Positions 1,346-24,916 of a stretch of 26,409 nt of DNA are shown piece after piece. Both the position numbers and the translations under genes were made by a program. The notes beneath the pieces were generated by a model, which worked only from the letters and a program-made list of their open reading frames with translations, made no database searches and was not told the DNA's origin. The stretch covers positions 1 through 26,409 of the forward strand of contig NW_021834079.1 of the NCBI RefSeq assembly GCF_006345805.1. Reading direction: 5' to 3'. The first letter of the stretch is position 1, and each line of letters begins with the position of its first letter. This DNA is from Octopus sinensis. Lineage: Eukaryota.

Positions 1346-2031
1346 TGCCTCTTATGGCAGAAGGGAACTGCGTCAGGCTGCAGTTTGCAAAATAGTGCCT
1401 ATAGTTTTTAATAATCAACTTCTACCTGTAAATGTCCAAGATTTCCAAAATTTTCTGGAATTGAATCGCCACTGTTGTTGTTCCTCAAAAGCAAGTTTTC
1501 CAGCGGAGTAAAACTCAGCACCTATCGTGAACAGAAAATAATACATATTCTGGAAATAAGTTTAACTTATTGCTAGAAATATCTAACGATTTAATTTGAC
1601 AGTTCTTTTATAGTGCAGAGAACTCGGTAATTTCGTTGTTTTTCAACAATTTCAATAATTTTGGAAAGCAACCCAAAAACAACTTGGGAAATGTGTTTAG
1701 TTTGTTAGAATCAAGTATAATAGTCTCCACGTTTAGCATGATTTTTATTTCTCGTGGAGTTATCCAAATTTTGTTAAATTTTGAGTGAAACGTATTTCAG
1801 ACAAGGCAATATTGTTATGATATATGGAAATTCTTCAAGATTACACTTATCCAGTGTTATCCAAGTAACATTAAAAGACAAAAGAAGAGCTTGAAATTTC
1901 GGATCATCAGGACTGATCCTGGATAAGTCAACTTGCCGTTTCTGAGATTTTCCCCTGTGACGAAGAAAGCATTTGAGCTTATTTCCCTGCAGTTGCTGAT
2001 CTTTGTTCGATTTATCGCTGTGATTTTCCAT
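1346..2031 (-). pseudogene. Leucine-rich-repeat protein gene, disrupted and 3'-truncated by the R4 element
   Basis: ATG at 2031. LRR units include ITLDKCNLEEFP, VETIILDSNKLNTFP, IKSLDISSNKLNLFP, LENLLLRNN and NCSLTQFP. GT-AG introns lie at 1544-1522 (23 nt) and 1425-1399 (27 nt). There are frameshifts near 1780 and 1390 and an in-frame TAA near 1610. Confidence 0.8.
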
Positions 2032-2335
2032 GTAAAAGTTCAATCAAATCCGAACGTGTAGAAAAATAATATTTTAGCCTTGGAAACTAAAACTAAGAAT
2101 ACAATGTTTATACTTTAAAGTTTTATTATTACAAAAAGTATATTTAATCTACCAACAAATACTAAACTCTCGCAGGCCAACATCTTTTTGCCTCCGTCGC
2201 ATTCGAAGCATCGGAGGTCGCCGGAATCACCACGACAGACTTCATCCACAATATCGAAGAAAGATCGCTCTCCGAAAAAGAAATAATACCCGAATATTAA
2301 ATATTCAAAATAAATCAAATTTGGACACTCGTAAC

Positions 2336-3737
2336 TTAGCGCAGGGTAGACCGGTCAACCTGCATCATCGAAGGGTGGACAGGGCGAGGCTCATCAGTGA
2401 AGTAATCATGAGTAAGAGCATCCTGAGCGGAAATACGTTTTTCTGGAGAATAGCGAAAAAAAGAATTGAGCAAATTGAATCCATTCACAGTAAGGTAGTT
2501 CCCAAACCTGTTCCGCAATGAGTTATAGCGATAGTCCGGAATTTTAATCATCTTCACTCCTTCCAACTCGGTGAACCCCGGCCAAATCTTCTCGTTCGGA
2601 GAGCCAAGGTCCTTCAACTACTTGATCAATACAACCTTAAAGATTGCGTGAAGTTGATCAATCTCCGACCTGGAGGTCCAGAGGGGTCTCATGAGCAGCA
2701 ATTCAGCAAACACACAACCAACAGACCACACATCAACCTTTGTCGAATATTTCTTGAATAAAAAACACACACATACCTTGATCCCCAACAACAACTCGGG
2801 AGACCGATACCACAGAGTCACAATGACTGGCGTGTAGTTCTTAAGGGGAGAACCATATTCTCGGGCGGAACCAAAGTCACCCAACTTGAGGACCCCCCGG
2901 TCAGTGATGAGTATGTTTGAAGTCTTAATGTCCCGGTGGAGGATCCAGTTATCGTGCAGGTGGGCCACGGCGGTAAGCAGTTGCCTTAAAATGCACTTGA
3001 CTTCTCCAATCCTAAAGGGTGACTTGCGAGCCTCGATTAGCGACTTTAGGTCACTTTGGACGAAATCCATAACCACGTATATTCGATCCATATGTGACCC
3101 CACCACAATTTCCCGCACTCCCACAATGTTCTCGTGGGGGGCTTTCAACAAAGTAGATACCTCACGAAGAGAGGTTATCGGAAATCCATCCTTTTCATTC
3201 TCCATCTTGAGTCGCTTCAAAGCCACCAACTCGCCCGTGGTTTTGTCACGTGCCTGGAAGACCACTCCGTAACTCCCCTCCTCCACCCGAGACAGGTTTT
3301 CATACTCTTCCACAAACCGACACCCCTGAATTGCCGGGAAATACGACGCGAGTTTTTTTTCTGGGAATTTTTTTTGAGGGACAGCAATCTCTTCGGCAAC
3401 AATCTCTTCAGCAACAATCTCTTCGGGACTGTCCTCGCTGTTGTCGCCCTCTTCCTTTTTTTCTAATCAGATCTAACGATTTAAAAACTATACCAATTTC
3501 AGTCTCGCTCTCTGAGTTTTCAGACAAAGGAATGTCACGGAAAAATCCACGACGCTCAATCCTCATTTGCTTGGCACGGATTACCTTCCTTGCTAACAAT
3601 TCTGCAGAAAAGTCATTTTGTCCGCGTTTCTCTGATTCGGTTTTTAATGAGATTTTATAGTCTAGTTCGTTCTTATTGGATTCAGAGTCTGCCTCGGATA
3701 CTTCTCCATTTTCTAATAAAATCTTGAATTTCGACAT
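2336..3737 (-). CDS. CDK11: Cyclin-dependent kinase 11 (PITSLRE kinase), 4 exons, 440 aa as spliced
   Basis: Exons are 3737-3494, 3462-2777, 2752-2636 and 2611-2336 (1323 nt, open). Introns are 31, 24 and 24 nt. Motifs: YFPAIQGCRFVEEY, EEGSYGVV, GFPITSLRE, HRDIKTSN, DFG, VTLWYRSPELLLG, DLGSPNEKIWPG. Splicing restores LLGIK-KYSTKVD and IFK-DLG. Confidence 0.95.
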
Positions 3738-3831
3738 TGATACACAATACTACAACAAGATAGAAATAATAGTTATTATTAATTATATGATTTCCATTCT
3801 ATAATCAAGAAAATATTTTTTTACTTATAAG

Positions 3832-4360
3832 ATAATTTTGAGTCCACTTCTTTTCAACCTCGTCTTGTCGGACATTCCCCTGCCGTCTGTATGTACTGGC
3901 AAGCTTGTCATCTACACTGATGATATCCTGGTTATGGATACCTCGAAAAGGATATCACAGTCTTGGAGACGATTGAAGTCGTACATTGCCGAGTTAAAGA
4001 AGTGGACTGCTGAGAAGGGCTTGACCATAGCCATCGAGAAGAGCACCATTTCATGGACGCGAAGAGGAACACGTTGTGCAGCTACGTATTCCTATGCTAT
4101 GAGTGGTTATGATATGGATCTTTTCAAGAGTTTGAATCTAGACTATTTCGGAGTAATAGTCAACTTCTGTGGTTCGTGCGCCGACCACGTAGCTAAACAG
4201 AGGAAGAAGAGCGTTAGAATCCTCAGAAGCTTAACCAGTTCCATCTGGATCCGGAAACTTACATCTACGTCCACAAAACATGTCTACAGCCAGTCCTCAC
4301 ATATGGCTAGAGTGACTACCTTGTCGAACAGTTGGAAAAAACAAAACGTTTCGGATTGAA
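3832..4360 (+). mobile_element. Decayed non-LTR RT fragment (I/Jockey-group-like), domains 5-7 onward
   Basis: LSPLLFN...LVIYTDDILV (degenerate YADD)...WTAEKGLTIAIEKS...LDYFGV...RILRSLTSSIW. No upstream RT domains are present. Confidence 0.75.
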
Positions 4361-4494
4361 ACTAGCTTATGGAGTACAACTTGACGGAAGGCTAGAAAAC
4401 TCGCAAGAATCTTCTGTCCCCACGATCCGGATGGTCTTGGAGAAATGTTGTCAACACCGACATGAAAAAAAATCTCAAACTAGGACGTTAATCA

Positions 4495-5210
4495 TTTGAC
4501 TTGGCCTTAAGACGTGAAAACTACTATAGACAAGAGAAAATAAATATGCAAGCTCTCCACGTGTGTAAAATTAATCGACCCGTTTTTTTCACGAAAACAG
4601 TCCCCTAGAAAATATTAACTTGTTCGGTGTCATTTACATCCTTCGTTTTATCTCAAACTAAGGATCCACTTGACGTGGTCTTAAGATGTAAGACCTGTAA
4701 TAGAAATTAGAAAATAAATATGCGAGATCTCCACGTATGTGGAACCAATCAACATGATTTTTTTAGGGAAACAGTCTCACGTGCTTTTCGACAATATTAA
4801 CTTATCGACCACTTCGACATTTATTCTACCATCAAAAACTAAAGATTCGTGGTACGTCGTCTCAAGATGTGAGACACTCTATAAAAATCAGAAAATAAAT
4901 AGGTCGATTGTTGGGACACACGAGTTGAACTTGAGCATTGATTTTCTGATTTTCGGAGTAGGTCTTAAATCTTAAGACGAAGAATTGTGAAAGCTTAGTT
5001 TAAGATTGTAGAAAAGTCAAACAAGTTAATATAATTGACGATTTTCCTTTAAAAAATCAGGTGGATTGGTTCCAAGCACGTGGAGAACTTCATAATGATA
5101 TCTTAATTTTCATTATATGTCTCACATTTTAAGAAGACGTATTGTGAAGCTTTAGTCTGAAATAATAGGAAGGATGCCGAGAAGAAAGAACAAATTAATA
5201 TAGCGTTTAA
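4495..5210. repeat. Foldback structure built from a degenerate ~175-180 bp subrepeat
   Basis: Forward units carry TTAAGAYGT..GAAAATAAATA..CTCCACGT..AATATTAACTT at ~4508, 4681 and 4862. Inverted units follow 4941. The core inverted pair is AAAATCAGAAAAT (4884-4896) and ATTTTCTGATTTT (4941-4953). Confidence 0.7.
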
Positions 5211-5319
5211 CTCATGACGTCGAAGAGAGTCAGTTGAATGTAGTACGAGTACAGTAGAGGCATCTAACGTGTAGATCTCCTCCCACGTAGGGACCGATCG
5301 CCATTGGTTATTATATTAC

Positions 5320-5620
5320 GCAATATATTATTATAGGCACTTTTGCGATGCCATGGATCATGACAAAGCTTGTGCAGCACAGGAAACAATAAGAGTAATT
5401 AGTCTATTCCATTTCCCGCGATCTTGGGCAACGTCCCGTAGTGCATCGAGATCGTCCCCGGCTTTCAATTCTTTACGAGCCCTCTTTAGGTCTCTATCCA
5501 GCGTACCTGGGAGAGTATTTCTTGGTCGCCCACAGAAACGATGACCCCCAGCTTCGAAATAGTCTGTCGCGAGCGCTGAGAGCGATGACAGGTGATTTGA
5601 CAGCTGCCAGCATCTGTCAT
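5320..5620 (-). mobile_element. RTE-clade LINE 3' end fragment
   Basis: RFCGRPRNTLPGTLDRDL...DDLDALRDVAQDRGKW is the RTE C-terminus and parallels 11764-11950. It is followed by a GTGCCTATAATAAT 3' tail like the one near 11724. Confidence 0.8.
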
Positions 5621-5654
5621 GATAAATATATAACAAACTTCAAAAAAGAAATTA

Positions 5655-5835
5655 AAGATAGCTAAGTAAATTAAAGGCCTCACGAGACACCCGGCCAGCC
5701 TCGCAAATGGCGAAGCCGTTCCCTCGGATCACAGCAATCGACAGACGTTCCAGGAGCCAAGAAAACTCTCTTGGATCGTGACTAGTCCTTGAAATCCGTC
5801 GACCGAGCGAGCGAAGGAAGCGGAGTGTCTTGGGG
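5655..5835 (-). mobile_element. CRE-clade retroelement 3' end fragment
   Basis: FGPKTLRFLRSLGRRISRTSHDPREFSWLLERLSIAVIRGNG is the CRE/RLE C-terminal helix. About 100 bp are nearly identical to 6476-6575. Confidence 0.8.
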
Positions 5836-5889
5836 CCGAAAAATTATAAATATACATAATTATCATAAATTGATTCACTTTATTAAAAA

Positions 5890-6350
5890 AATTATAAATT
5901 AAGTTTCGAAATAATTTGGGCAATCAGGTGTTAAGGAAAATCCAAAACGTTTTGATATGGAAGAATTGGAAGTTGGAGAAAATCCAGACATTTATAATAA
6001 AGGTTTTTTATTGTTATTTATTAGTAAAAATGATGAGTACAATTTAATTTTGAGAGGATGAATTTGGAGTCTTCATATTATAGAAGAATGAATAGGAAAA
6101 TGGGAGTCCATCGATCAAAATATGAGTTAGATGTTGGACATATTGTATTCTATTTTTAATTACTTAAAGGTTCGTGTATAAAAAGATTATGGGACGAATC
6201 CTTCTCTTCGATTAAAAAAATTTGAACATCCGTATGGGGATCCAGTAACTATTGTCGAGAAATTGTCTAACAATTTTGTCAAAGTGCTAGGTCTATTAAG
6301 AAAGTTGATTCAAGGCGACTAAAAAAATTCAAGAGGACTTAAATAATTGT
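5890..6350 (+). mobile_element. Ginger2-type transposase C-terminal relic with a micro-intron
   Basis: YYRRMNRKMGVHRSKYELDVGHI, then a 25-nt intron (6145-6169), then VRV*KDYGTNPSLRLKKF. This matches GVHRSKY..GDK|IRIKKDYGTNPSL at 24270-24390. Confidence 0.75.
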
Positions 6351-6435
6351 TAATTATTATTCTTTCTCGATCGCGTCTAATTCTTTCTCGATCGCGTCGG
6401 CTTCCCGTCCATGAAGCTTTCAACACTTGACCGAA

Positions 6436-6577
6436 TTTTTTTTTTAAACAAGAAAGAAATTAATAAGTTAATTAAAGGCATCACGAGACACCCGGCCAGC
6501 CTCGCGAATGGCGAAGCCGTTCCCTCGGATCACAGCAATCGACAGACGTTCCAGGAGCCAAGAAAACTCTCTTGGGG
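6436..6577 (-). mobile_element. Short CRE 3' retrocopy with poly(A)
   Basis: Near-identical to 5676-5773. It has a T-rich 3' UTR and a T11 run at ~6436-6446, which is a poly(A) on the minus strand. Confidence 0.7.
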
Positions 6578-6749
6578 TTAAGGTTTAACTCTCTTGCCAA
6601 GAAAATTCTTTTTTTGTAACAAATAAATTCATATTTCTTCAAAAAAAATTATCATTTATTAATTGTCAATAATTGACCTTAGTTAACTTTGATGTAATAG
6701 ATTTTTTTTGTTAAAATTTTTTTTATTTAATGGAAATTGTTAAAAAAAT

Positions 6750-8818
6750 CTAGCTATTAAGTACTGGCTCGCAGAATTGAAAGACAATTCCCGCGTAAAA
6801 CAGCCAGCGAGATCCTCTGAATAAGGAATATAAATTTCCTGGGATCTCGGGAGCGATAGTTGCACAGACGGCCAAGTTTCTTAAGGTGAGCAAACGTCTT
6901 GGCCCCCAAAACATAGGAAGTCTCGACGGCAATTGTTCAAAACCTAAATCGGTCGCGCAAATCCTTGTATTTCGTTAATTTCGCGAATTCGGCCTTCTCG
7001 GCCGACGAACCGGGGCGACAAGCCGTGGAATTCAAGGCTTCCTTGGCGAAAGAGTCGGCACACATGACGTCCCAAACGGAGTGAATCCTTATCGAGAACA
7101 GTATCCAAAAGCGGAGAAAAAAGTACATTCAGCCAGGAGCCTGAGTATGGCTGACAGGCGGAACGGAAACAAGACAGTCTGTGTTGGTCGAGTTTTGTCC
7201 CAATCTCGCTGAGAAAAGATATCGGAAGGGACTTCAGAGAAATTTTGTTTCCAAAGTGCAAGGGTCGAATCGATATCAGAGTCCAACGATGATTCAGTAG
7301 TTTTTTCCAGAATCTTTTGGACAAGGAGATATGATCCAGACGCCGAAAAAAGAAAGGCAGGAAGAGCCAAATCAATACTGGAACGGAGGCCCAGACCCCC
7401 GTGACTCAAGGAAGTTTAGCCTGACACCAGGCAATATCGTCGAAATGCACATTAAGAATTTTCTCCGCAGAACTCGAACGAATTTATCATATGATTCCAG
7501 CACTTGCGTGACATAAAAACAAGGAGAGCTCCTCAGGATATAAATAATTTTTGGGATCAAAAGATAATTCTTGCGGATGTAGAATGAAGGATGAGGATCA
7601 ATGATAGAAAGTTTTTCACAAAGAGATGCGATAAGATTTTTTTGGCGAGGAGGATTCGTGTAGCTGAGTCGGCGAGAATCGGTGACCCCAGAATTTCCAG
7701 ATCAGACAGAAGTGTCTGTCTCAACTCAGGAAGGAGTCCACAGAAAAGAGAGAAGAAGTTCTTAAACAGGGATGGCTCAACAGAGAAATTGACAATCTCA
7801 GACTTGCTGGAATTAATGTCGGATAACGCCGAAATTAGAATGGCCAGGTCCTTCAACAAAACACCAGGTGGACCGCCCAGGGTGCAATCGTCGAGATACC
7901 AGAGATTAAGGAGTGATTCATTAACCCGGGCAATGGGATCCACGGCAAGAGCGAAAAGTAATGGTCCCAAAGGATCACCCTGTTGGACGCCACAGGACGA
8001 AGAAATGAAAAAACCGCCGGCGATTAAAAGTGATGGAAGCGAGTACGAAAGTGAGATAAAAGGAAGCAAGTGTGGAACACGGTCTTGACAGACCTCCAAC
8101 AAATAGCCACGGTCCAGAGAATTGAAAGCATTAGTTACATCCAGTTTCAATAAGGCAAGGGGAATATTGGAACGAATAGAAGCGTGAATAAAACAACGAC
8201 AGGCATAGACAAAAGACTCGCAGCCGCCAGGAACACCCACACCCAAATGAATGGGCTGCAGTTGCTCGCCAATAGAAGGGATAACGGACTTGCAACAGAT
8301 TTTCGCAAATAAACGACGAAAGACATTTCCAACAGGAATAGGCCTGATACCACCATCTTTCTTGCCCAAAGCTGTAAGATTCGCGGAAAAGAACAGAATT
8401 CTAGCATGGTCAGAAATTTTGCCGCTTAGAAATAAATTGCACAAGTTAGTGCAAGCATTCAAGAGGTGATTCCCGGTATCACCAGTTGCGGAAATTAAGT
8501 CTCTCAAATGAATAGGGCGGAGACCGTCGATACCTTTGCTACTGTTACCCCTAAAAAAGTTTAAGACGTCCAGAAGTTGTTTGGAAGAAACAGAAAAGGG
8601 AAAACAGGAGGAATGGGCCATATCAAAGGTTACTGGTTTTCTAATAGGGTGCTTTTCCTTGAGAATGCGAGCAACATCGGGGGTGATTGTACGGACAGAA
8701 TCGGAAGATGACAAGAGACGAACAGCCGCGCTGACATCATGCGACATTAGACAGGAGTTAATCAGAGACCGTAAACGTTTAGAAGCGTCCTTCGACGAGA
8801 GCATAGCGGTAGATTTTA
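6750..8818 (-). mobile_element. CRE-clade non-LTR retrotransposon (copy A), 5'-truncated, frameshifted, internally deleted
   Basis: RT ORF 7557..8804 has FFSANLTALGKKDGGIRPI, LDVTNAFNSLDR, GVQQGDPLGPLLF and WYLDD. Later frames give GGLGLRS and QHRLSCFRSACQPYSGSWL, then WDVMCADSF..KAEFAKLTKY..VETS..QRISLAVLRGN. The zinc knuckle and RPDG are missing at ~7090. Confidence 0.92.
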
Positions 8819-8821
8819 AAT

Positions 8822-9060
8822 GGGAGAGAAACGGAAGATAAAGAGTGAGAAATACGCTAAAATTGGAAATGACAGAGTGTTTGTCCCCTTGACTGTTGAG
8901 ACGTCAGGAATACAAGGAACCTTCTACTCGGAGCCTACTCCTGCGGATTGGCTCACTAATGGAAAAGGTTACCGGCGATCCGTCTAAGCACCGGTATTTA
9001 ACCGAACGAATATCCATAGCCATAGTCAGAGGCAATGACCAGTTTTCTCTAGTCTTTTTA
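8822..9060 (+). mobile_element. RLE-type (CRE-like) retroelement C-terminal fragment, head-to-head with copy A
   Basis: EKRKIKSEKYAKIGNDRVFVPLTVETSG...VTGDPSKHRYLTERISIAIVRGN. Confidence 0.75.
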
Positions 9061-9139
9061 TTAATAAATGTCACCGTCCAGACCGGCCGGGGTGCCAGAT
9101 CGGTCACGTTCAAAATTAAAAAAAAATTATCTTTTTTTT

Positions 9140-9236
9140 GGGATGATTTTTTTGGGATGATTCCTCTGGATTGCATGAAATTGATAGCTTCTGACATATT
9201 TGTGGGTAGATTGAATAGATTGACCTCACTTCTCAT
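9140..9236 (-). mobile_element. Possible Merlin/ISXO2-like transposase N-terminal stub
   Basis: NLFNLPTNMSEAINFMQSRGIIPKK resembles the EAIxFLQxRGILP start of eukaryotic Merlin transposases. No DDE core or TIR is visible. Confidence 0.3.
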
Positions 9237-9339
9237 TTAAATTAAAGTAGCGTGGGATTTTATTATTTTTATATTGTATTATTTTTAATTATATATTTTT
9301 TTTAACTAAAAAAAATATAGTTTTTTTAAAATTCGCTAA

Positions 9340-9845
9340 AAAGTGGCCGCCAACTACTACATATGTACCGTAAACCATTCCAAAAAAATGATATGTTTAT
9401 TTGAAAGTAATTTTGTTTGCGAACAGTTATTTTTAAAAATGAAAAACACGAAAAACAATCATAGAACAGAAATTACTGATAATCATCTTAAATTACTGAT
9501 AATCATGTTCCGCCTCTTAATTAGTGATTTCTTTACCTTATAAACTGTCTAAATTCAAAAAAAAAAAAATCATCTTAATGTTGTTTTAATTTTAGCGTCC
9601 ACGACCTATGCACCCAATATCGATGAACTCCCGAACAATCCAAAGTAGTCGATTGAAAGAAGGACAAATGACAGTATATGAAAAATTAAACAGCAAATTC
9701 ATTTAAAATAAAATTTACACGTTGTTTGGATAAAGTTTTATTCAATTAATTAATATTAGCCCTAAATAAGTAAAAAAATATCCGGCCCGCAGACCAATAA
9801 TTTTTTATAATCCGGCCCGTGAAGTCGAAATTCTGCCGACCCCTG
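9340..9845 (+). mobile_element. hAT (Buster/SPIN/Charlie-type) transposon 3' relic with right TIR
   Basis: LFESNFVCEQLFLKMKNTKNNHRTEITDNHL matches the hAT dimerisation-domain pattern FGSTYxCEQLFSxMKxxKxxxRxxLTDxHL. Subterminal TCCGGCCCG occurs twice (9781, 9811). The TIR TGCCGACCCCTG (9834-9845) reads CAGGGGTCGGCA on the other strand. The flank CTTTATAA fits the Buster NNNTANNN target. Confidence 0.85.
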
Positions 9846-10110
9846 CTTTATAAGAATGGAATACTCAATTCGATTGAAAGTAGGGAGCATGTTAAAATCG
9901 AATGACTTGAAATTTTAATAATTAAATAAACATTCATTTTTATTTTTTGTTAAATTCACTCTTAGTAAAACAAGCCATCATTAAATTATACAAATTTTTT
10001 GCTTTTGTATTGAAATTTGTTCAATTTTTGAGTATATATTTTAACCATTTTTGTTAAGCTAAAATTAAATTTAAAATAAACGAACATCAATAATAAATTA
10101 CATCAAGAAA

Positions 10111-11210
10111 ATGCGATCATTCTACCACTGGGTGATATTAGCGTGATAATAAACACAGGCATCTATTCTTACAGACGTCGAGATAGTCACCCACTGCAGA
10201 CTAAGTGATTATACAGTCTTCATCCGATTAGTCGACATTATGTAATACTTTTATTTTCACCAGTTGTGACACTACCACCACAAATACGGCACTCATTAAA
10301 AGACAAGAGTACGTGAAAGAATATTTGGAGCATGGTTTGCTCTTTATTCATTTTTCAGTCTTCGAGGATTCCCCTGTGGAATTGGATTGTGTGTTTGACC
10401 TTCTGAGCCACGACGACTGTTTTAGCTTAAATTCTGTATTATATTGTATACTATTCCTTATTTACTCGTATTGCTTTTGACATTACTTCCTTCTTCTGTC
10501 TCCGAGTCAATTTTGTATAAAATTAACGAGAGTCTCTCTCTGTTGAGTATGGAAGATTACACTCTGCTCGGTGGTGTCCTTCCCACCCTTTACGATGAGA
10601 CTGATTCCGTCAAACCCTCGCTTTGGGCCATTGGGGAACTTTGTGTACATCCCTTTCGTTGTTTTTGTATTCATTTTGTAGTTTCTTTGGAGGTGAATGA
10701 GACAGTCGAGTCCAAGGACGACATCTGTCTCCGTGATTTACTCCAATCTGTCATTTCTCGCCGAAATGTACTAATTTTTTGGCCCTTCAAGAAATAGGTG
10801 CAGTTGGAGCAACTTGAAGTGCAGGTAAACGAGAAAGAACGTCAAATAAAGTTGATTTCTCAACAATTGTTAGAAGCACAATCCCGTTTAAGACAAGAAG
10901 GTGGGAAACAATATATTTGTGCATAGAGGACAAAGCCCAACTTCTCTCCTCGCAGTGCAAGCAAAGTGAGATCACGATAGAACAACTCGGAAAAGAGTTG
11001 AAAAATTTAAAGCCGAAAACATTGGAGGTTGATTCCTGCCTTTTGACTGGTCGGAATATTGAATTGCATGAGCGTTGGTGTCAGTTGAAAGAGTTGTGCG
11101 CGGATGCTACCAAAAAATTGAAGGAATGTAAAGAAGAGCATAAACTGTTAGAGAATGCATTCCTGTTCAGGCAACATAAAAAAATAATTAAAAAACAACT
11201 ATTTAATTAG
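10111..11210 (+). CDS. NuMA/Hook-type N-terminal CH domain plus coiled-coil protein, 7 exons, ~315 aa, one unresolved frame break near 10440
   Basis: Introns: 10132-10158 (27), 10242-10263 (22), 10335-10358 (24), 10658-10681 (24), 10768-10797 (30), 10901-10926 (26). Spliced: MRSFYHWASILTDVEIVTHCRLSDYTVFIRLVDIIC...RQEYVKEYLEHVF...YLLVLLLTLL...VQLEQLEVQVNEKERQIKLISQQLLEAQSRLRQEEDK. The N-terminus resembles NuMA (W..LQDCSIFIKIIDRI). Confidence 0.7.
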
Positions 11211-11321
11211 TTGTGCGTCAAATTTTTTTCGGAAGCCAAAAGGCCACAATGGCATCTAGTAGTTCGTCAAATGCGTTGCGCTGTTTAACTCATTTACTTG
11301 TCCTCTCAAAAGAAATGTTTA

Positions 11322-11384
11322 TCGACAATATTAACATGTGTAACCTCCTCTACAACCTTCCTACCATCTCTAACTGAGGATTCA
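11322..11384 (+). repeat. Dispersed partial copy of the ~180-bp foldback subrepeat
   Basis: TCGACAATATTAAC is identical to 4788-4801. CTACCATC..AACT.AGGATTC also matches the 4495-5210 units. Confidence 0.5.
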
Positions 11385-12232: not shown

Positions 12233-13166
12233 AAGAGCATTCTGTTGATAAAAGAACAGATCGACGAAAGAAACCGTGATCTCGAGTTTCCAGTGTCCGG
12301 CGAGATTAGGTCCTTAAGATGTCCTGGTCGCAGCCCGTCTAGACCCGTCCCGCTGCTTGGAGCGAAGGATAAAATTCCGGCTTTAATGTCATCGTCCGAG
12401 ATAAACAATGGCTGAAGAATCCCTGGGAGAGGTGGAATTCGAGAGTCGCTTTGAGCAGCCGGATGTCGATCCAGGAGAGCTTCATGAGTCTCAATTGAAG
12501 GCTTCAGGAATGGACTATCACTGGAGAGCACTCTCAAAGCCGAGTGTATTCCTCCTTCCAATAATTTAGAATGAATAGTCCTCCGTAAATGTATCTCTTC
12601 AGAAAGTGTATCCTTTGGTATCTTTCGATGACTCTTCACAGTAGCCGGTTGTAATGGGGGATCGATCACTGTAAGTTCGGAATCAAACAGGCGTATGTTT
12701 TCTTTGTCGGACGATGAAAAAGATCTACCACGATTCGTAGAACCAGAAGGTAAACCCAAACACAACGGGCAAAACAAAGCAGGCGGATCCAGTAACTGAT
12801 GTCGTTCGATGATAACGAGCTTTCAATGCTGGCTGAAAGGCAGTCGGCAGCGGTTAAACGAGCTCCTCTGGGAATCCCTATGAGGATGTGTCTTGAGGAT
12901 GACCATTTAGAAATCGTGTCAAGTAGGCGTTCGTGATCCAACGGCACAGTGCAAGCAGTTTGATTGAAGGGGGCAGTGCCAGCTGGAAAGCATCGATGAC
13001 AGTCCCAATGGGAAATGTTAGTAAGGGCTTTCTTAGAAACTCCTACGGATGACATGTGAAAGAGCCTTGAGCACGCTGAACAAGTGATCGTTCTCTTTCT
13101 CGTGTTAATTATGTTGCATTTTTCGCACGAATGGCTGTTTTTCTTATTTACCTCATTAATCTTCAT
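12233..13166 (-). mobile_element. CRE-clade element 5' part (copy B) with N-terminal PHD finger, fused in frame to the RTE segment
   Basis: The 13166 ORF reads CEKC..CSAC..FHMSS..WDCHRC, continuing in frame into IPRGARLTAA..SSND..WIRLLCF. After a frameshift it reads SKLLEGGIHSALR..DRHP..GLDGLRPGHLKDLIS..INRML. Confidence 0.88.
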
Positions 13167-13479
13167 TGCACTGACTCTGTGTTGAAAATAGTGATTACAC
13201 TACACCACGTCAAAAAAATTCATATTAATTATTTTACATGTCCCGAACGTGTCTTAATCTGATACAGTGAATACTCGCAAATTCGCTATTTTTGGTCATT
13301 TTTTGCTGATAATTTGAGAATTCACAAATTTCAGAATATAATCAATAATTTTTGAATGTGGTAAAACTGTTTAATAATTTAAAAATAGACAAAATTGACG
13401 TAATTAAAAAAATTAATTTAATTCTTCTTTTCCTAATTTGAGGGAGACCTTCCAATTTGGAATTATTGACATTATAAAC

Positions 13480-14190: not shown

Positions 14191-14299
14191 ATATGTAATT
14201 GAGATTATGAAATAAATTGAGTAATAATTTGCTTAAAAAAAATTTGCACGTTGCACGTTGTTGTTGTGGTGCACTTTTTCAGTATATTTGTCAACCTAT

Positions 14300-14472
14300 C
14301 TTATCTTTTTCTTTCATTTTATCTCTCCATTTATCATTTCTTTTTCTTTCATTTTATTTGTCCTTCTATCTCTTCCATTTCTTTATTTCATTTTTCTTTC
14401 TTCTGAACTTCTTTCTTCTTTCTTTTCTATTTCTTTTTTATACATTTCCATCTTTCTTTTCTATTTCTTTCC
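14300..14472 (+). repeat. Polypyrimidine low-complexity tract (TTTC/TTC-like)
   Basis: About 170 nt made almost entirely of T and C, ending just before ATG 14477. Confidence 0.85.
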
Positions 14473-14476
14473 TACG

Positions 14477-17188
14477 ATGGCTATTTGCTCTTCATGCAAA
14501 ACTAGCAACGATCGGAAGAAAGGTAGATACTGTTCTGGCTGCAACAGTTTCTTCCACCTTTCGTGTGTTCGACTTTCCAGGCGCGTTTCAGCTTCTCTCA
14601 TAACCTGGAACTGCCCTGTTTGTCGTTCTTGTTCCCCGTTCGGCCAACAGTCCGCCGGAAATCCCTGCTGAAAGTCCATCTCCGTCAGCCGAAGATGCTT
14701 TAAGATTCATCTATTCTTCTCGCTGTAACCGCCAAATTCCGGCACGGATACCGAAGGCAGCGAGGATTCAAGCTGCTCTCTCTTTGTCCACAGCTATAAA
14801 CCGAGCTTTGTCATCTAATGACCAGTCTGACTGGTTACTCCTTTTTGGTTTTGCTGTTTTCGGTATTGGGATCCAACCCTCCCGGCCCGACAGCGAGTCT
14901 AAAAAACTTTCTCCCGCATCGATTATTAAACAGCAACTCGCCCTATTCGATCATTGTACTTCTCTGTTTCCCTCCCAGTTCGATTCCCTCCACTCTGACT
15001 CTCACAAATGTGTCGCCCCTTCTGTGGTTAACACTAAAACTTCCTCCGATTGCATTTACCTCCGTCGTAAGGTGAACAGCAAGCTGTTGGACGGCGACGT
15101 CCGCGGAGCTGTCAGACTTGTTGCCTCCTCTAACCGGCTTTTGTCCCCATCTCCTTCCGCATTGTCTAATTTGAGATCCAAGCACCCCAGTCCTCCAGTA
15201 AACTCCCGCACCCAACCCGCTGTCGATACGACCGCCCTTCCGCAACTGCTGGTTACCGCTTCACAGGTTGAGAAGGCACTGAAAAGTTTTTCCCCAAGCA
15301 GCAGTGGGGGTATAGATGGGCTGAAGCCCGGACACATTAAAGACTTGACTTCACCTCTTACTGCTGAGGCAGGCCGTCTCCTCTTGGAATCTATCACCAA
15401 TCTCTGTAACCGTCTTATCGGTGGGAATTTACCGGATTTTGCCCGGGCGATTTTCTTCTCGGCTAATCTCACTGCTTTGGGTAAAAAAGATAACGGGGTC
15501 AGGCCGATCGCCGTGGGTAATGTTTTCCGCAGATTGGCCGGAAAGCTCGTTTGCCACGTTGTGATCCCCGAGTTGGTCCCGAAATTTTTGCCAGTCCAAT
15601 TGGGCGTCGGCGTCAGTGGAGGGTGTGAATCGGCTGCCCATGCCGTAAGAGAACTTATGGATTCTTCATTGGAATATCTTTTAGTTAAACTGGACATATC
15701 AAATGCGTTTAACACAGTGAGACGGGATCATTTGCTCGAGACCTGCCTTTCTCTCGCCCCCTCCGCTTATCCTCTGGTCCACCTTTCGTACTCACAACCC
15801 AGCCTCCTCCTGTTTGGCGATTCCTTTATCGTCTCATCGACCGGAGTGCAACAGGGAGATCCCCTGGGGCCTTTCCTATTTGCTATGTGTGTCAACTCCG
15901 TCGCTCATTCTGTCCGCTCTCCGGTAAATATCTGGTACTTGGACGACGCGACGATTTGTGGACCTCCCCGCTCTGTCTTAGACGACCTGCGGAGCATTAT
16001 CCCGGCCCTTTCATCCATCGGTCTGGAGATAAACTCAAGCAAGTCCGAAGTCCTAAACCTGAATATTCCTTCCGATTTTTTGCCGAAACTCTGGACGCCC
16101 TGGAACCTATTCTAAAAGGCGCGCGGGTATCAGAAACAAAGGACCTTGTAATCCTTGGTTCGCCAATTGGTCACGAGGCCCTCTCACAAACGCTCATCGC
16201 CAAGGCAAGCAATCTGTCAAACATGATCGAACGGCTTTCCCTCATTGATGCCCACGTCGGGTTCTTTCTTCTGCGTAACTATTTCTCAACTCCGAGGCTT
16301 TTGTACACCCTAAGGAGTTCTCCTTGTTTTCGCATGCCTAATCTGTTATCCGATATCGATTCTATCTTGAAGTCTGGAGCCGAGTATCTGTGCAACATCC
16401 ATTTCGACGCTCTGGGGTGGCTTCAATCTTCCCTGCCTGTTAATCTCGGGGGGATTGGCCTTCGTTCGCCCGTTTATCTGGCTCTTCCTGCCTTCCTCTC
16501 GTCCCTGGCATCATCCCGTGCCCTCACTGACATCGTTCTCAGAAACCTTCCCGAACGAAAAATGTCAGTTGATCACGTGGCCGCTCTGGACCTTTGGGAT
16601 TCATTGTACAACAAAAGACCCAGTGACCCGTGTATCCAAGCTCAATGGGATGCCATTTCTTGTGAAGCTCTTGACGTACATCTACGCAAAAATTTCGATC
16701 AGCACAGACTTGCATGTCTCCGCGCAGGCTGCTGCACAGGGAGTGGGGCCTGGCTGGATGCTCTCCCTGTCCCTTCCACCGGTAACCTACTAGACAAAGA
16801 TTGCCTACGAATTGGTTTATCATTGCGTCTTGGATTGGAAATCTGCGAAATACACAAATGTCGTTGTGGTGCTGTCATTGACCGTTTTGGTCTACATCCC
16901 CTTTCCTGTCGTCGCAGTGCAGGGCGCGCACCACGCCATGCAGCACTTAACGACGTTATTCAGAGGGGGCTCACGGCCGCTGGGATTCCATCAATCCTCG
17001 AACCCGTCGGGCTTGCGAGGGGAGACGGAAAAAGACCCGACGGCCTATCGGACTTTCCCGTTTGAGTTCGGCAAGTCTCTGTTATGGGATGCGACGTGTT
17101 CAGACACTTTCTCGGAGCTCAACCTTCCTTCTTCAGCTGTCGAGCCTGGCTCAGTCTCTCGCAAAACCGAGAAGATGAAGATTGGAAA
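14477..17188 (+). mobile_element. Near full-length CRE-clade retrotransposon (copy C): PHD - RT - zinc knuckle - RLE, 3' end cut by satellite
   Basis: From ATG 14477: CSSC..CSGC..FHLSC..WNCPVC (C4HC3). Frameshifts occur near 14660, 16085 and 17045. Motifs: GVQQGDPLGPFLF, WYLDD, CRCGAVIDRFGLHPLSC, RGDGKRPDG, LLWDATCSDT. The last ~60 codons and the tail are absent. Confidence 0.93.
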
Positions 17189-20100
17189 GATTTTGTAATA
17201 AATTATGTGACATATTATGCAATTTGGGAAGGTAGCAGGATGTGAGGATTTAGGGGTACTTGAGATTATGTAATTAATTGCGCAATATATACAACAATTT
17301 AGAGAGGTCTCTAGATGTGTGAATAAGTGGGTACTAGAGATTATGTAATAAATTGCCTAATATATTACGTAATTTTTAGAGGTCCCTATATGTAAAGATA
17401 TATGGGTTCTTGAGATTATGTACTAAATTGCGTTATATACTTTCCAATTTGGAGATGTTTCTAAATTTTAGGTTATGGGGGTACTTAATATATATCATAA
17501 ATTGAGTAACATTTATATTATCAATTTGGGGAGGTGCAGGATGTAAGGATATGGGGTTCTTGAAATTATGTAATAAATTGCGTAAAATATGAATTTCCAA
17601 AGTTTTCCAGGATGTAAGGATCTATGGGTTCTTGAGATTATTTAAAGATTTCGTTATGTATTTTCATTTGGAGAGGTCTCTAAATGTTTGGATATGGGGG
17701 TACTTGAGATTTTGAAATAAATTATGTAACATATTATGCAATTTGGGAAGGTGCCAGGATGTGATGATTTAGGGGTACTTGAGATTATGTAATTAATTGC
17801 GTAATATATACTACAATCAAGAGAGGTCTCTAGATGTGTGAACAAGTGGGTAATTGAGATTATGTAATAAATTGCCTAATATATTACGTAATTTTTGGAG
17901 GTCCCTATATTTAAAGATATATGGGTTCTTGAGATTATGTACTAAATTGTGTTATATACTTTCCAATTTGGAGAGGTTTCTAAATTTTAGGATATGGAGG
18001 TACTTGAGATTAAATCATAAATTGAGTAAAATTTATATTATGCAATTTGGGGAGGTGTCAGGATGTGAGGATTTAGGGGTACTTGAGATTATGTAATTAA
18101 TTGCGTAATAAATTGCGTAAAATATGAAATTTGGAGAGGTCCCACGATGTGAGGATATATGGGTTCTTGAGATTATTTAATTTATTGCGTTATATATTTT
18201 CAATTGGAGAGGTCCCTAAATGTTGGGATATGGGGGTACTTGAGATTTTGTAATAAATTATGTAACATATTATGCAATTTGGGAAGGTGCCAGGATGTGA
18301 GGATTTAGGGGTACTTGAGATTATGTAATTAATTGCGTAATATATACTACAATTAAGAGAGTTCTCTAGATGTGTGAATAATGTGGGTACTTGAGATTAT
18401 GTAATAAATTGCCTAATATTACGTAATTTTTGGAGGTCCCTATATGTAAAGATATATGGGTTCTTGAGATTATTACTAAATTGCGTTATATACTTTCCAA
18501 TTTGGAGATGTTTCTAAATTTTAGGATATGGGGGTACTTGAGATTATATCATAAATTGAGTAACATTTATATTATGCAATTGGGGAGGTGTCAGGATGTG
18601 AGGATTTAGGGGTACTTGAGATTATGTATTAATTGCGTAAAATTGCGTAAAATATAATTTTGGAGATTTCCAGGATGTGAGGATATATTGGTTCTTGAGA
18701 TTATTTAATAATTGCGTTTATTATTTTCAATTGGAGAGGTCCCTAAATGTTGGGATATGGGGTACTTGAAATTTTGTAATAAATTATGTAACATATTATG
18801 CAATTTGGGAGAGGTGTCCAGGATGTGAGGATTTAGGGGTACTTGAGATTATGTAATAATTGCGTAATATCAACTACAATTTAAGAGGTCTCTAGATGTG
18901 TGAATAAGTGGGTACTTGAGATTATGTACTAAATTTGTTATATACTTCCAATTTAGAGAGGTTCTTAATTTTAGGATATGGGGGTACTGAGATTATATCA
19001 TAAATTGAGTAACATTTATATTATGCAATTTGGTGAGGTTGCAGGATGTAAGGATATGGGGTTCTTGAAATTATGTAATAATTGCGTAAAATTTAATTTT
19101 GGAGAATTTCCAGATGTGAGGATATATTGGTTCTTGAGATTATTTAATAGATTGCGTTATATATTTTCATTTGGAGAGGTCTCAAATGTTGGGATATGGG
19201 GTTACTTAAGATTTTGTAATAAATTATGTAATATTATGCAATTTGGGAGGTGCCAGGATGTGAGGATTTAGGGGTACTTGAGATTATGTAATTAATTGCG
19301 TAATATATACTACAATTAAGAGAGGTCTCTAGATGTGTGAATAAGTGGGTACTTGAGATTATGTAATAAATTGCCTAATATATTACGTAATTTTTGGAGG
19401 TCCCTATATGTAAAGATATATGGGTTCTTGAGATTATGTACTAAATTGCGTTATATACTTTCCAATTTATAGAGGTTTCTTAATTTTAGGATGGGGGGGT
19501 ACATGAGATTATATCATAAATTGAGTAACATTTATATTATGCAATATGGTGAGGTTGCAGGATGTAAGGATATGGGGGTTCTTGAAATTATGTAATAAAT
19601 TGTGTAAAATTTGAATTTTGGAGAATTTCCAGGATGTGAGGATATATTGGTTTTGAGATTATTTAATAGATTGCGTTATATATTTTCAATTGGAGAGGTC
19701 CCTAAATGTTGGGATATGGAGGTACTTGAAATTTGTAATAAATTATGTAACATATTATGCAATTGGGAGAGGTGTCAGGATGTGAGGATTTAGGGGTACT
19801 TGAGATTATGTAATTAATTGCGTAATATCAACTACAATTTAAGAGGTCTCTAGATGTGTGAATAAGTGGGTACTTGAGATTATGTACTAAATTGTGTTAT
19901 ATACTTTCCAATTTAGAGAGGTTTCTTAATTTTAGGATATGGGGGTATTGAGATTATATCATAAATTGAATAACATTTATATTATGCAATATGGTGAGGT
20001 TGCAGGATGTAAGGATATGGGGGTTCTTGAAATTATGTAATAAATTGCGTAAAATTTGAATTTTGGAGAATTTCCAGGATGTGAGGATATATTGGTTCTT

Positions 20101-21186
20101 GAGATTATTTAATAGATTGCGTTATATATTTTCATTTGGAGAGATCTCTAAATGTTGGGATATGGGGTTACTTAAGATTTTGTAATAAATTATGTAACAT
20201 ATTATGCAATTTGGGGAGGTGCCAGGATGTGAGGATTTAGGGGTACTTGAGATTATGTAATTAATTGCGTAATATATACTACAATTAAGAGAGGTCTCTA
20301 TGTGTGAATATGTGGGTACTTTAGATTATGTAATAAATGCCTAATATATTACGTAATTTTTGAGGTCCCTATATGTAAAGATATATGGGTTCTTGAGATT
20401 ATGTACTAAATTGCGTTATATACTTTCCAATTTGGAGATGTTTCTAAATTTTATGATATGGGGGTACTTGAGATTATATCATAAATTGAGTGAGTAACAT
20501 TTATATTATGCAATTAGGGGAGGTGTCAGGATGTGAGGATTTAGGTTTTCTTTAGCCTATGTAATAATTTGCGTAATAAATTGCTTAAAATATGAAATTT
20601 CCAGAGGTCCCAGGATGTGAGGATATATGGGTTCTTGAGATTATTTAAACAATTTCGTTATGTATTTTCATTTGGAGAGGTCTCTAAATGTTTGGATATG
20701 GGGGTACTTGAGATTTTGAAATAAATTATGTAACATATTATGCAATTTGGGAAGGTGCCAGGATGTGATGATTTAGGGGTACTTGAGATTATGTAATTAA
20801 TTGCGTAATATATACTACAATTAAGAGAGGTCTTTAGATGTGTGAAAAAGTGCGTAATTGAGATTATGTAATAAATTGCCTAATATATTACGTAATTTTT
20901 GGAGGTCCCTATATGTAAAGATATATGGGTTCTTGAGATTATGTACTAAATTGCGTTATATACTTTCCAATTTGGAGATGTTTCTAAATTTTAGGTTATG
21001 GGGGGTACTTAATATTGTATCATAAATTGAGTAACATATATATTATCCATTTGGGGAGGTGTCAGGATGTGAGGATTTAGGGGTACTTGAGATTATGTAA
21101 TTAATTGCGTAACAAATTGCGTAAAATATGAATTTTGGAGAGTTTCCAGGATGTGAGGATATATTGGTTCTTGAGATTATTTAATA
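17189..21186. repeat. Higher-order satellite of ~75-bp monomers (7 types, A-G)
   Basis: Monomer starts at 17189, 17264, 17339 and 17414 are 75 bp apart. Type-A monomers start at 17189, 17708, 18244, ~18770, 19210, ~19730, 20176 and 20712, giving units of 519, 536, 526, 440, 520, 446 and 536 bp. Confidence 0.95.
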
Positions 21187-21648
21187 TGTCGCGAGCGCAG
21201 CGAGCGACCACTCAATTTCTAGATCCGATCAATCAAAAAATCTATAAATTGACAAATACCCAGGCTTGTATTTGGGATTAAATATATTCGATAACAAAAA
21301 TTAAAATCGATGCCAAAGCAGAATGAGCTTTAAAACCGATTTCATAAATAAAAATAATATTTTAAAATTTATAATTGATATTTTAGAATAATGAGAAAAA
21401 ATCTAAATGCTTCATAATTTATTAAAAATGTCAAAACAAGAATCTTCTGAAGGAGCAAGCCTGTCTGCACAGTTCATTTTTGATTAGAAGACCTAATTTT
21501 AGAGATTAAAACGAAAAAATAGCAATGAGATCTGTCAAATTATTACCCCCCTCACAACCAAACCAAATTAGCGTTCAGTATTCATTGATTTTACTTTTCT
21601 ATTAAGGTCTAATTATAAATTATTTTATGGGATTCAATGGAAAACTTA

Positions 21649-21683
<35 letters not shown>

Positions 21684-22977
21684 TTAGGGTCAAACTACTA
21701 AGTAAAGTCAACAAACTAATAAATTCTCCCAGCGAGACGGAGGGAACAGCTGTTGCCACGCATGACAGCCAGCAGGATCCTCTGAATGGGAAAGTAAATT
21801 CCTAGGGTCCTTGACGCGAAAGAACAAAGATGTCCCAATTTCTTTAGGGAAGTGAGGGTCCCGGAGCAAAGACGCCGGAAGTCTCGACAACGATTGGCCA
21901 AAACCAAAAGTCATCCATCAAAGACTGATATTTCCGGCACTTCGAAAGCTCAGCCTTATTAGCACGAGACCCAGCAAGAGAGGCCGATTCGTTGATGAAA
22001 GACTTTGAGAAGGTATCCACACAAGTGGAATCCCAGACCAAAGGTCTCCCAGAATAAAACGAGAACAACGTAGAGCCGTCCGGCCTTTTCCCGTCACCAC
22101 GGTCGAGACCCTTAGGCTCAAGGACAGAAGGGTAGCCGGCCTTTTCGAGTGAGTCGAGAATGATTCTGTTAATCGCCGAATGGCGTGGAATACGACCGCG
22201 CTTTTCTTGCAGGAGAGGGCATGGAGCCCGTATACGTCCATAGTAGATCCGCACCGGCAGGGGTGGGGACTACAGATCGGAAGTCCGAGGCGGAGGCAAA
22301 TGCCAAAACGGAGGGCGTCGGAGTCAAGACAGGTGTCCAAATGGGTCGAAGGAAGGCAGTTAAGCCAAGAGCCAGAATGCGGTTGGCGGCTGGCACGGTA
22401 ACAAGCCAGTCTGTGCTGGTTCAGGAGAGCCTCCAACGAGTCCGCATGATGCTTACTAAGAATTTTATCCCATTCACGTTGGAGGGACCTATCAGAAGGG
22501 AACTCAAGCCCTTTTTCCTTCCAAAGCAAAGTGCAGAATTAATATCAGAGTCCAAACGAGATCCGGGCGATTTTCAAGAATCTTATGGACAAGAAGATAC
22601 ATCCTGAAGACGATGAAAGGAAAGCGGGAAGAGAAATGTCGAGAGCCGAGCGGAGCCCAAGCCCACCAAAAGGAACAGGAAGTTTGGCCTGACGCCAACC
22701 GACATCATCGAACTTGACGTTAAAAATAATCTCGGCTGAAGAACGCACCAGAGCGTCAAAAGACTCAAAGCAGAGGGAACAGAAAAGCAACAGGAACTCC
22801 TTAGGACATAATTGATCCTCGGAATCAAAAGAAAGTTTTTGAGGATAAAAAAAGCGGGATGGGATCGATGTCCACAAGTTTATCACAAAGAGAAGCAAGA
22901 GCATTTCTCTTGGAATCGAGAATACGAGAGACCGATTGGTGGTGGATCGGGGCACCCAGGATTTCAAGTTCAGAATA

Positions 22978-24916
22978 TGTCACGAGCCTAGTCGTTACGA
23001 GCTAGGTCGTGACATTTCGCTTATGTTTCTATAAAGATTAAAAATTAATTATCGCTGAGCCTAATAAAATTATTCTTAATATTTAAAATTAATCTTATTA
23101 ATTAAAACAAAATATCCGGATAATTATACATCCGTAATTGTAATATACATATAAACGCGTGTTTTTTCTGTGTTACCTATGTCGCGTTCTTTTGTAAAAG
23201 ATATGGATGAGTATCGATTGCTTGAAAAAGTTTTAACTGGACAAAATATTGAAAATCAATCGAGGCAAAAAGTTTACTCCCTTAAAAAGAAAGCTGAAAA
23301 GTTCATTTTAATCAATGGAAGAATATACCTTAAACAGCCGTGTGGAAATCACAAATTAGTGATTTCGACGGACAACGTTGACGAGATGAAATTGGTGGCT
23401 AGCCAAATTCATCTCGTTTCGCATTGTGGACATAACACTCTTGAGAACATGTGCCATGAAAGATATTTCACTGTAAAACGACAAATAATCCGAAAAATTG
23501 TTGCCGATTGTGAAATTTGCAAATTTTCAACTCCCTTGAAAGTAGGGGGGAAGAGAAAATCATGTGATTGCAATCGTCCCAATGAAAAATTCCAGATGGA
23601 CTTAATTGATCTGAAGAGGTATCAATTTTTGTATTATATAATAAAGATTTAAACAAACAAATGAAACTATAGCAGGCTTAACGGCTTTTAACGGTTATTG
23701 ACGTCTACTCGAAGTTCGCATTCACTCGAAACTAAAACATAAAGCGGAATTGACGTTGCTGAAAATCTCAAAAAAATTTTTCTACGTTTGGACGTGTCCA
23801 TATTTGCAATCGGATAATGAAACTGAATTCAAAAATCCACATGTGACTGCATGTGTGAATCTTTCAACATTCAACAGATACACAGTAGGCCAAACAATCC
23901 CAGAAGTCAAGGATCATCGAGCGTTTTAACCAAACGGTTACCAGGTCGCTATCTAAAATGATGGCTAATGATGAAGATAAGTGTGGACGAAGTATATAGA
24001 TTGAAGCTGTTTATTTTAATTAAAGTAAACATTCTTCTACTGGTTTTCTTAAAAATTATTCATTTTAGGAGATTCCCCATTTCATAGATATCGTGGGATT
24101 AGAGGATCGAACAACTTCATTCCTGAAAAGACATGAGATGAAGAGTGACAATTCAGATGGTTAGTTAAAATTCGCAATATATAGAATAGATTCGAAAAAC
24201 ATAGAATTTTCTTTCAACTTTCCGCACACCGATGTGACATCTCCATATTCCAAAAAAATGAACCAGGAGAAGGGGTGTTCATCGGTCAAAATATTCATTT
24301 AATTGGAGATAAGGTAAAACTCAAATTATTCTAAATTGTAGATAAGGATCAAAAAGGATTATGGTACCAATCCTTCACTGCACTCAAAAAATTGAAAGTC
24401 CATACGGAGAAGTTTGTACAATAACTGAAATCCTGCGCATAATATGGTCAGAGTTCAAATGGATGAGGGAACTACTAAGAAGACACTCATGAAAAGAATT
24501 AAAAAAATTTAAATAACATAATTGATTGTTTTGTTAATAAAAAAATTCAAAACCTAATTAGCAGAGAAACATTCATGACCGAACATTCAAATAGACAAAA
24601 TTTCGAATAAAAATACATTTTCTGCGTATTTTTCTAATTTAAAGCATTTTGAATTTTCTTATTTGAAAAAAATAGCAATTCATAAATTAAAATATTATTT
24701 TAGTTCGGGAATCGTTTTTAAAGCACGGTCTAGTTGGCAATTTTTTAAATTCTATCATCGAAAAATATTGGCATCCAATTCCATTTTTAGTATTTGTCAT
24801 TTTATAATATTTATTTGACAAAGTCGATTTGAAATTGAATTCAAATATTTTTTGAATTTTTTTTCTAAGTCCATAAGGTAACGACCTAGGCTCGGTAACG
24901 ACCTAGGCTCGTGACA
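22978..24916 (+). mobile_element. Ginger2/TDD-type DNA transposon, 1939 bp
   Basis: ~37-39 bp TIRs TGTCACGAGCCTAG(G)TCGTTAC.. lie at 22978-23014 and 24878-24916. The 5-bp TSD GAATA lies at 22973-22977 and 24917-24921. It encodes a retroviral-type integrase and has no RT, RNase H or LTRs. Confidence 0.92.
23179..24512 (+). pseudogene. Ginger2 DDE integrase/transposase with four micro-introns and several frameshifts
   Basis: HHCC finger (HLVSHCG..CEIC), D1 in QMDLID, LTVIDVYSKF, D2 in QSDN, and E in IERFN 35 residues later after repairing two 1-nt shifts. Also HSSTG|DSPF and GDK|IRIKKDY. Introns: 23619-23646 (28), 24043-24068 (26), 24160-24189 (30), 24314-24341 (28). Confidence 0.85.

Follow-up and report, generated by a model that had tools for sequence, protein, structure and literature searches.

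Introns of about 23-31 nt in a CDK11 gene and a Ginger transposon of probable dicyemid DNA

To our knowledge, animal introns shorter than 30 nt are confined to dicyemid mesozoans and myxobolid myxozoans. Dicyemid introns have been reported to measure 26.2 +/- 1.9 nt (PMC2222250), with a median of 27 bp in a later account (PMC6543705), and the cited section on the Dicyema japonicum genome gives a GC content of 36.7%, repeats making up 49% and multiple copies of ORF2 from long interspersed nuclear elements (LINEs) (PMC6736024). The part of a 2026 comparison drawn on here lists median introns of 27 bp for Henneguya salminicola and 22 bp for Thelohanellus kitauei and Myxobolus rasmusseni, and describes reduced 'GTa ... 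AG' signals with upstream A residues in D. japonicum and in myxobolids (PMC13644364). The stretch of DNA analysed here, referred to as the window, is contig NW_021834079.1 from positions 1 to 26,409 (forward strand) and consists of 26.4 kb of eukaryotic DNA with a GC content of 39.6%. A preliminary description had proposed 16 GT-AG introns of 22-31 nt in its genes and had called it dicyemid-like. Analysis of a CDK11 kinase gene, a Ginger-type DNA transposon with a relic copy, a decaying leucine-rich repeat (LRR) gene and an orphan coiled-coil gene indicates that the window is very probably metazoan nuclear DNA in which U2-type GT-AG introns are reduced to about 23-31 nt in length, the host being most likely a dicyemid mesozoan.

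The gene for the PITSLRE kinase CDK11 is located on the minus strand (2336-3737) and comprises 440 codons in four exons (3737-3494, 3462-2777, 2752-2636 and 2611-2336, TAA stop included). In a protein search the spliced product matched metazoan CDK11B with at most 67% identity (E = 4.5e-146), all named sequences among its best 120 matches were CDK11B, and the GFPITSLRE motif is present. The kinase domain aligned without gaps to six metazoan CDK11B proteins, including both sites from which 24-nt introns are removed. The first of these (intron 2, 2753-2776, minus strand, GT..AG, phase 0) interrupts LLLGIK/KYSTKV, where the slash, here and below, marks the junction. It coincides in position and phase with introns of Trichoplax (LLLGVK/EYSTAV) and Nematostella (LLLGIK/EYSCPI), and in position with an exon boundary of Elysia (LLLGCK/EYSTHV). 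The second (intron 3, 2612-2635, minus strand, GT..AG, phase 0, at AIFK/DLGSPN) contains an in-frame TAG and likewise shares its position and phase with introns of Trichoplax and Nematostella, and its position with an Elysia exon boundary. The exon that separates the two introns measures 117 nt in the window and in all three of these animals; exons were mapped exactly for Trichoplax and Nematostella and by tblastn for Elysia. Since both 24-nt introns occupy sites conserved among animals, they are spliceosomal introns of ancestral origin, reduced here to 24 nt. At the remaining ancestral intron sites of the kinase domain, no intron is present in the window gene. Judged by the CDK11 matches and the conserved intron positions, the organism is a metazoan.

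The remaining CDK11 intron (intron 1, 3463-3493, minus strand, 31 nt, GT..AG, phase 1) connects the kinase ORF to an ATG at 3737. With this segment retained, the first exon runs into a stop and the kinase ORF lacks an ATG upstream of the catalytic domain; the intron is located in an N-terminal region that cannot be aligned, so homology provides no check on it. This N-terminal region is short, at about 120 residues. At the other end, the protein terminates in ...PSMMQVDRSTLR followed by the stop (2336-2400, minus strand) and lacks the FPTWPAKSE...GFSLKF tail that is conserved in other animals. Where a downstream exon encoding this tail was sought, only a four-residue chance match was detected. 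The earlier view of these segments as minimal spliceosomal introns is supported, as is a genetic code unlike that of Paramecium: the 440 codons are uninterrupted by a stop and end in TAA.

All 16 segments proposed in the preliminary description were located, each with GT...AG termini and the length it had been assigned. The window contains 1505 GT..AG segments of 22-31 nt, counted on both strands together, so the pattern alone is no evidence and the context of each segment decides. Alignment or ORF reconstruction showed that removal restores the frame or conserved protein sequence in 11 of the 16, which agrees with the previous statement that most of them do so. Five introns are proven by homology (two in CDK11, two in Ginger and one in the Ginger relic), while a further six are required for the reading frame or for a start codon (one in CDK11, one in the LRR gene, two in the orphan gene and two in Ginger). 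These 11 supported introns have a mean length of 26.8 nt (range 23-31 nt), which fits the dicyemid mode and also the myxobolids, and a GC content of 25% as compared to 47% for the CDK11 coding sequence. All have GT and AG termini, with a reduced 'GTa' donor, a TAG or AAG acceptor and no real polypyrimidine tract. Upstream of the AG, A is the commonest base at positions -7 and -4 (6 of 11 introns each) and is present in 4 of 11 at -8 and -9, in what is a small sample. In the same small sample, four introns have lengths divisible by three, three of which contain an in-frame stop. Micro-introns are thus almost certainly real features of this DNA. They would be removed by an ordinary U2-type spliceosome through intron definition, with A residues some 7-9 nt upstream of the AG possibly acting as the branch point. 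The sharing of one size class by CDK11, the orphan gene, the decaying LRR gene and the Ginger transposase indicates a property of the genome and its splicing machinery rather than of individual genes.

Introns of the same size were detected in a DNA transposon. The Ginger-type element (22978-24916, plus strand, 1939 bp) has perfect 14-nt terminal inverted repeats (TIRs; TGTCACGAGCCTAG) and is flanked by a GAATA target duplication. Its TIRs start with TGT, as Ginger termini reportedly do according to Bao et al. in 2010. The transposase gene (23179-24397), previously listed as a Ginger integrase with four introns, is not an intact spliced gene but a decayed copy. A tblastn frame map shows that its frame changes about eight times and is interrupted by one or more in-frame stops; the frame changes between conserved blocks leave no room for introns. 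On the frame-corrected translation, Pfam identified the rve domain (5.3e-12) and, weakly, Integrase_H2C2 (0.003). Logan assemblies contained two intact relatives, P0121 (45% identity) and P0122 (36%), the latter with both H2C2 and rve. One of the two, on L003, is a complete element of 1598 bp that has similar TIRs and lacks introns. The window copy therefore resembles described Ginger transposons in its H2C2 and rve core, TGT-starting TIRs and short target duplication, but differs in carrying four host-sized micro-introns and about eight frame changes; Ginger1 and Ginger2 are treated here as one group.

Alignment to P0121 provides a template for the Ginger junctions. Removal of the intron at 24043-24068 (plus strand, 26 nt, GT..AG, phase 1) gives IEAVYFN(stop)SKHSSTGDSPFHRYRGIRGSNNFIPEK, which is gapless over 35 residues against KVVHNYNISTHSATNKSPFRLFLNIPGFNTVATEK of P0121. 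Removal of that at 24314-24341 (plus strand, 28 nt, GT..AG, phase 0) gives LIGDK/IRIKKDYGTN, again gapless against EVGDK/VIVAKDFDTN. The 3' part of a second transposase copy, a relic, was located by tblastn with P0121 at 6058-6274 (plus strand) and has a 25-nt GT..AG intron (6145-6169, plus strand) at the same site as 24314-24341; its spliced product, VGHI/VRV(stop)KDYGTNPSL, has no gap against P0121. The other two introns of the element are less certain, being suggested by their fit to the template length and by the removal of stops. One (23619-23646, plus strand, 28 nt, GT..AG) removes two in-frame stops and yields DLKR/FKQTNETIAGL, which agrees with P0121 (DLKCYKEKNSNYAWI) to within one residue; a 45-nt alternative to it is possible. 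The second (24160-24189, plus strand, 30 nt, GT..AG) contains an in-frame TAG and its removal joins ...SDNSD/DSKNIEFSFNF. In the relic, a 22-nt GT..AG segment (6003-6024) is located immediately before the SKNxE[FY] motif, as at this 30-nt intron.

The LRR gene (1300-2031, minus strand) is SHOC2/RSU1/LRRD1-like and was recovered by three-frame translation with weak Pfam LRR matches. It matched LRR proteins in PDB with E = 1e-18 to 1e-7, contiguously over the conceptual junctions. It is not an intact spliced gene but has decayed: an A4 run (1782-1779) contains a 1-nt frameshift, a TAA stands in frame at 1610-1608, and its 3' part has been replaced by a 5'-truncated retroelement without long terminal repeats (non-LTR). 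It is probably a pseudogene, and the frameshift and TAA reflect either this state or homopolymer assembly errors. One of the two introns proposed for it stands. Removal of the 23-nt segment (1522-1544, minus strand, GT..AG) restores the frame and avoids a stop, and the junction NLFPEY/VLSFTPLENLLL keeps the LRR register without a gap against LRR proteins. The other (1399-1425, minus strand, 27 nt, GT..AG) is doubtful, as its removal leads into a frame that reads ALFCKLQPD, while the LRR-like continuation RHYFANCSLTQFPSAI needs 25 or 28 nt to be taken out. An alternative genetic code, raised by the in-frame TAA, was rejected: this gene has a frameshift as well, the CDK11 and orphan-gene models end in TAA, and the Ginger frame in TGA.

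The orphan coiled-coil gene (10111-11210, plus strand) was modelled by ORF reconstruction with up to eight introns. It had been labelled a calponin-homology (CH) gene, a label that was dropped as no CH domain was matched in Pfam at E <= 0.05 and no relative was found in PDB or among candidates taken from 5.8 billion protein clusters by a word-indexed search. The intron at 10768-10797 (plus strand, 30 nt, GT..AG) contains an in-frame TAG, and once it is removed the open segments on either side continue in a single frame. That at 10901-10926 (plus strand, 26 nt, GT..AG) corrects a frameshift, giving ...SRLRQE followed by DKAQLLSSQCK..., open to the stop at 11208-11210. A 24-nt candidate (10658-10681, plus strand, phase 1) is in frame without a stop and is optional, the unspliced ORF 10426-10794 being open across it; it is intron-like in composition only (75% AT, GT..TAG). 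Further upstream, many alternative GT..AG paths keep the frame open. Three candidates there (10205-10231, 27 nt; 10242-10263, 22 nt; 10335-10358, 24 nt; plus strand) are unverified and imply a 10-nt exon, and one more (10132-10158, plus strand, 27 nt) would give the ATG at 10111. The two halves of the gene are probably joined across 10436-10506, a predicted intron of 71 nt with a pyrimidine-rich 3' end, which implies that micro-introns are not the sole intron class in the window.

The lineage of the DNA was assessed from its genetic code, intron properties, composition and CDK11 sequence. Paramecium introns are about 25 nt long and those of chlorarachniophyte nucleomorphs are likewise minimal, so both resemble the window introns in being minimal GT-AG introns of similar size. 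For Stentor, 15-16 nt is given in the cited comparison (PMC13644364). The window differs from ciliates and nucleomorphs in having a metazoan CDK11, intron positions shared with animals and the stops TAA, TAG and TGA, and this standard code excludes Paramecium-type ciliates. Among animals, its likeness to Dicyema extends to uniform, very short GT-AG introns at conserved positions with reduced signals and to a repeat-rich genome of moderate GC content (39.6% in the window, 36.7% in D. japonicum), the repeats of the window including dense non-LTR fragments. A difference is the presence of micro-introns in a DNA-transposon gene, of which the cited portions of the dicyemid intron literature make no mention. 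The window CDK11 forms a long branch, with about equal distances of 34-36% to all slowly evolving animals. The smallest distances were to the nemertean Tubulanus and the molluscs Elysia and Candidula, by a margin of only 1-2%. Diagnostic columns were screened with balanced groups in place of a set dominated by about 87 fish sequences. At columns separating Bilateria from Nematostella and Trichoplax, the window has the bilaterian state in 4 of 4, with one gene and one cnidarian compared; at spiralian-specific columns it matches in 1 of 3, and that residue also occurs in the orthonectid Intoshia. Taken together, a dicyemid host has a moderate probability in its favour. The metazoan nature of the DNA, its standard code and its genuine minimal introns are thus supported, while its description as dicyemid-like is plausible only.

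Several points weigh against the interpretation of the window as dicyemid DNA with miniature introns, some concerning the introns and others the lineage. Five of the 16 proposed introns (the LRR 27-nt segment and four in the orphan gene) are unverified or doubtful, one likely intron is about 71 nt long, and removal from mRNA is deduced from termini, conserved positions and frame restoration in one 26-kb window rather than a whole genome. The preliminary set of 16 is thus upheld for 11 members, five by homology and six by frame or start codon. It could be argued that many of the segments are chance GT..AG occurrences in decayed or non-coding sequence and that the CDK11 introns alone are real. 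The 1505 such segments in the window, the frameshifts and stops beyond any intron in the Ginger copy and the LRR gene, and the many open splice paths of an orphan gene without a homologue are all consistent with this. However, three Ginger junctions are gapless exactly at GT and AG against intact homologues, one site is present in two copies and the LRR 23-nt junction retains the repeat register. By a rough estimate assuming equal base frequencies, five junctions with GT and AG at the block edges would arise by chance with a probability of about (1/256)^5. An accidental origin of many of the segments, with CDK11 alone excepted, is quite improbable.

With regard to lineage, the dicyemid assignment, although plausible, is drawn from indirect properties rather than from comparison with a dicyemid reference sequence, and the CDK11 lineage signal is weak, consisting of a few columns in one protein. 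A CDK11 phylogeny, which the preliminary description had suggested, was reconstructed by neighbour joining from 121 sequences and placed the window next to P0186, a placement that is a long-branch artefact. P0186 was rejected as a sister, its position being due to long-branch attraction and its contig (L006) being gene-dense and intron-free. This contig (Logan SRR31030835, 9938 nt) carries close-packed, intronless genes for a Ski2-like helicase, the CDK11-like kinase and a CCT chaperonin, and is probably from an intron-poor microbial eukaryote. Neither a full scan of 1.84 billion representative proteins nor the word-indexed search, which covered 5.8 billion clusters, yielded a match to the CDK11 exon above 72% identity. 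The presence of annotated dicyemid proteins in these collections is not established, so that their absence from the matches is uninformative. Myxobolid myxozoans, which are parasitic cnidarians and were missing from the lineages first considered, have introns of the same size (medians of 22-27 bp) at conserved positions. According to the cited part of the comparison, a 'GTa' donor is found in all myxozoans and a weak upstream A in myxobolids (PMC13644364), so intron length and motifs in the window do not separate them from dicyemids. A myxobolid carrying these same real micro-introns is nevertheless quite improbable as the source. In the genome accounts cited, GC content is lower (29% in H. 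salminicola, as compared to 39.6%) and LINEs are minor (0.46 Mb in M. honghuensis), whereas non-LTR elements bearing reverse transcriptase (RT) domains dominate the window. The window CDK11 has the non-bilaterian state at none of the four columns shared by Nematostella and Trichoplax, a comparison limited to few columns of a single gene and to one cnidarian. No protein grouped with the window CDK11 or was more than 72% identical to it, and no myxozoan was among the named top matches in a collection not checked for T. kitauei proteins (GCA_000827895.1). A third, unsampled animal lineage, such as a reduced spiralian parasite in which micro-introns evolved independently, would account for the missing CDK11 match, for the orphan gene without a detectable homologue and for the absence of any record in an exact look-up of one window ORF (7557-8804, minus strand). 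This is unlikely, since missing matches are uninformative where dicyemid proteins are not established in the collections, and intron size, GC content, repeat type and the weak spiralian signal all fit a dicyemid already.

The bulk of the window consists of mobile elements and satellite, with three non-transposon genes, and Rfam and tRNA scans across it found nothing. At least seven RT-bearing fragments were identified from stop-to-stop ORFs and Pfam, some of them with a PHD finger. Cysteine-rich, PHD-finger-like ORFs at 12669-13199 (minus strand) and 14237-14668 (plus strand) are located upstream of RT domains and belong to one retroelement family; their Pfam PHD match is weak (E = 1.8e-4, under the gathering score), and such an N-terminal domain is unusual for a non-LTR element. 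A satellite with a 75-nt unit occupies 17188-21186 (some 52 copies with 68% matches, strongly positive GC skew and a higher-order period close to 446 nt) and resumes at 25762-26409. The block of about 4.6 kb between the two parts looks like an insertion into the array. It measures 4575 bp and is bounded by 23-nt inverted termini, TGTCGCGAGCGCAGCG(A/C)GCGACC (21187-21209 and 25739-25761), which are identical at 22 of 23 positions and flanked by a TAATA duplication. A similar terminus was observed at 5565-5580, upstream of the Ginger relic, and the termini may belong to another Ginger-like family or to an element of composite structure. Within the block, an RT element on the minus strand lies in two halves (21847-22979 and 25034-25641) on either side of the Ginger element at 22978-24916, which appears to have split it in a nested insertion. 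Two motifs in its C-terminal half, one CCHC-like (HPCRCG...LHALSC) and the other KRPDG...WD, resemble the restriction-like endonuclease of R2/NeSL-type elements. A Pfam search of one piece (21921-22538) found nothing, the KRPDG motif being located in an overlapping, unscanned frame.

Micro-introns are already known, having been published since 2007, and the window is a further example. A less familiar detail, as far as the cited portions of the literature extend, is the occurrence of host-sized micro-introns in a DNA-transposon gene, at a site that is present in two copies and absent from the intact relative on L003. It is rather doubtful that the window represents either a third origin of introns below 30 nt, in neither Dicyema nor a myxobolid, or a process of miniaturization or miniature gain that acted on Ginger too. 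If this were true, the Ginger micro-introns would point to a constraint or bias of the splicing or mutation machinery rather than to selection that favours compactness in host genes. For annotation, every gene in the window would be broken by gene finders and RNA-seq aligners whose lower bound on intron length exceeds 20-30 nt, and a contig of this kind within a host assembly, whether of a cephalopod or a fish, would if the present interpretation is correct be flagged as parasite DNA. Introns below 30 nt mark the minimum size that still allows a spliceosome to recognize donor, branch point and acceptor. The window provides a worked example of this limit, in which two ancestral CDK11 introns have reached 24 nt with their positions unchanged and a transposon gene carries introns of the same size class.

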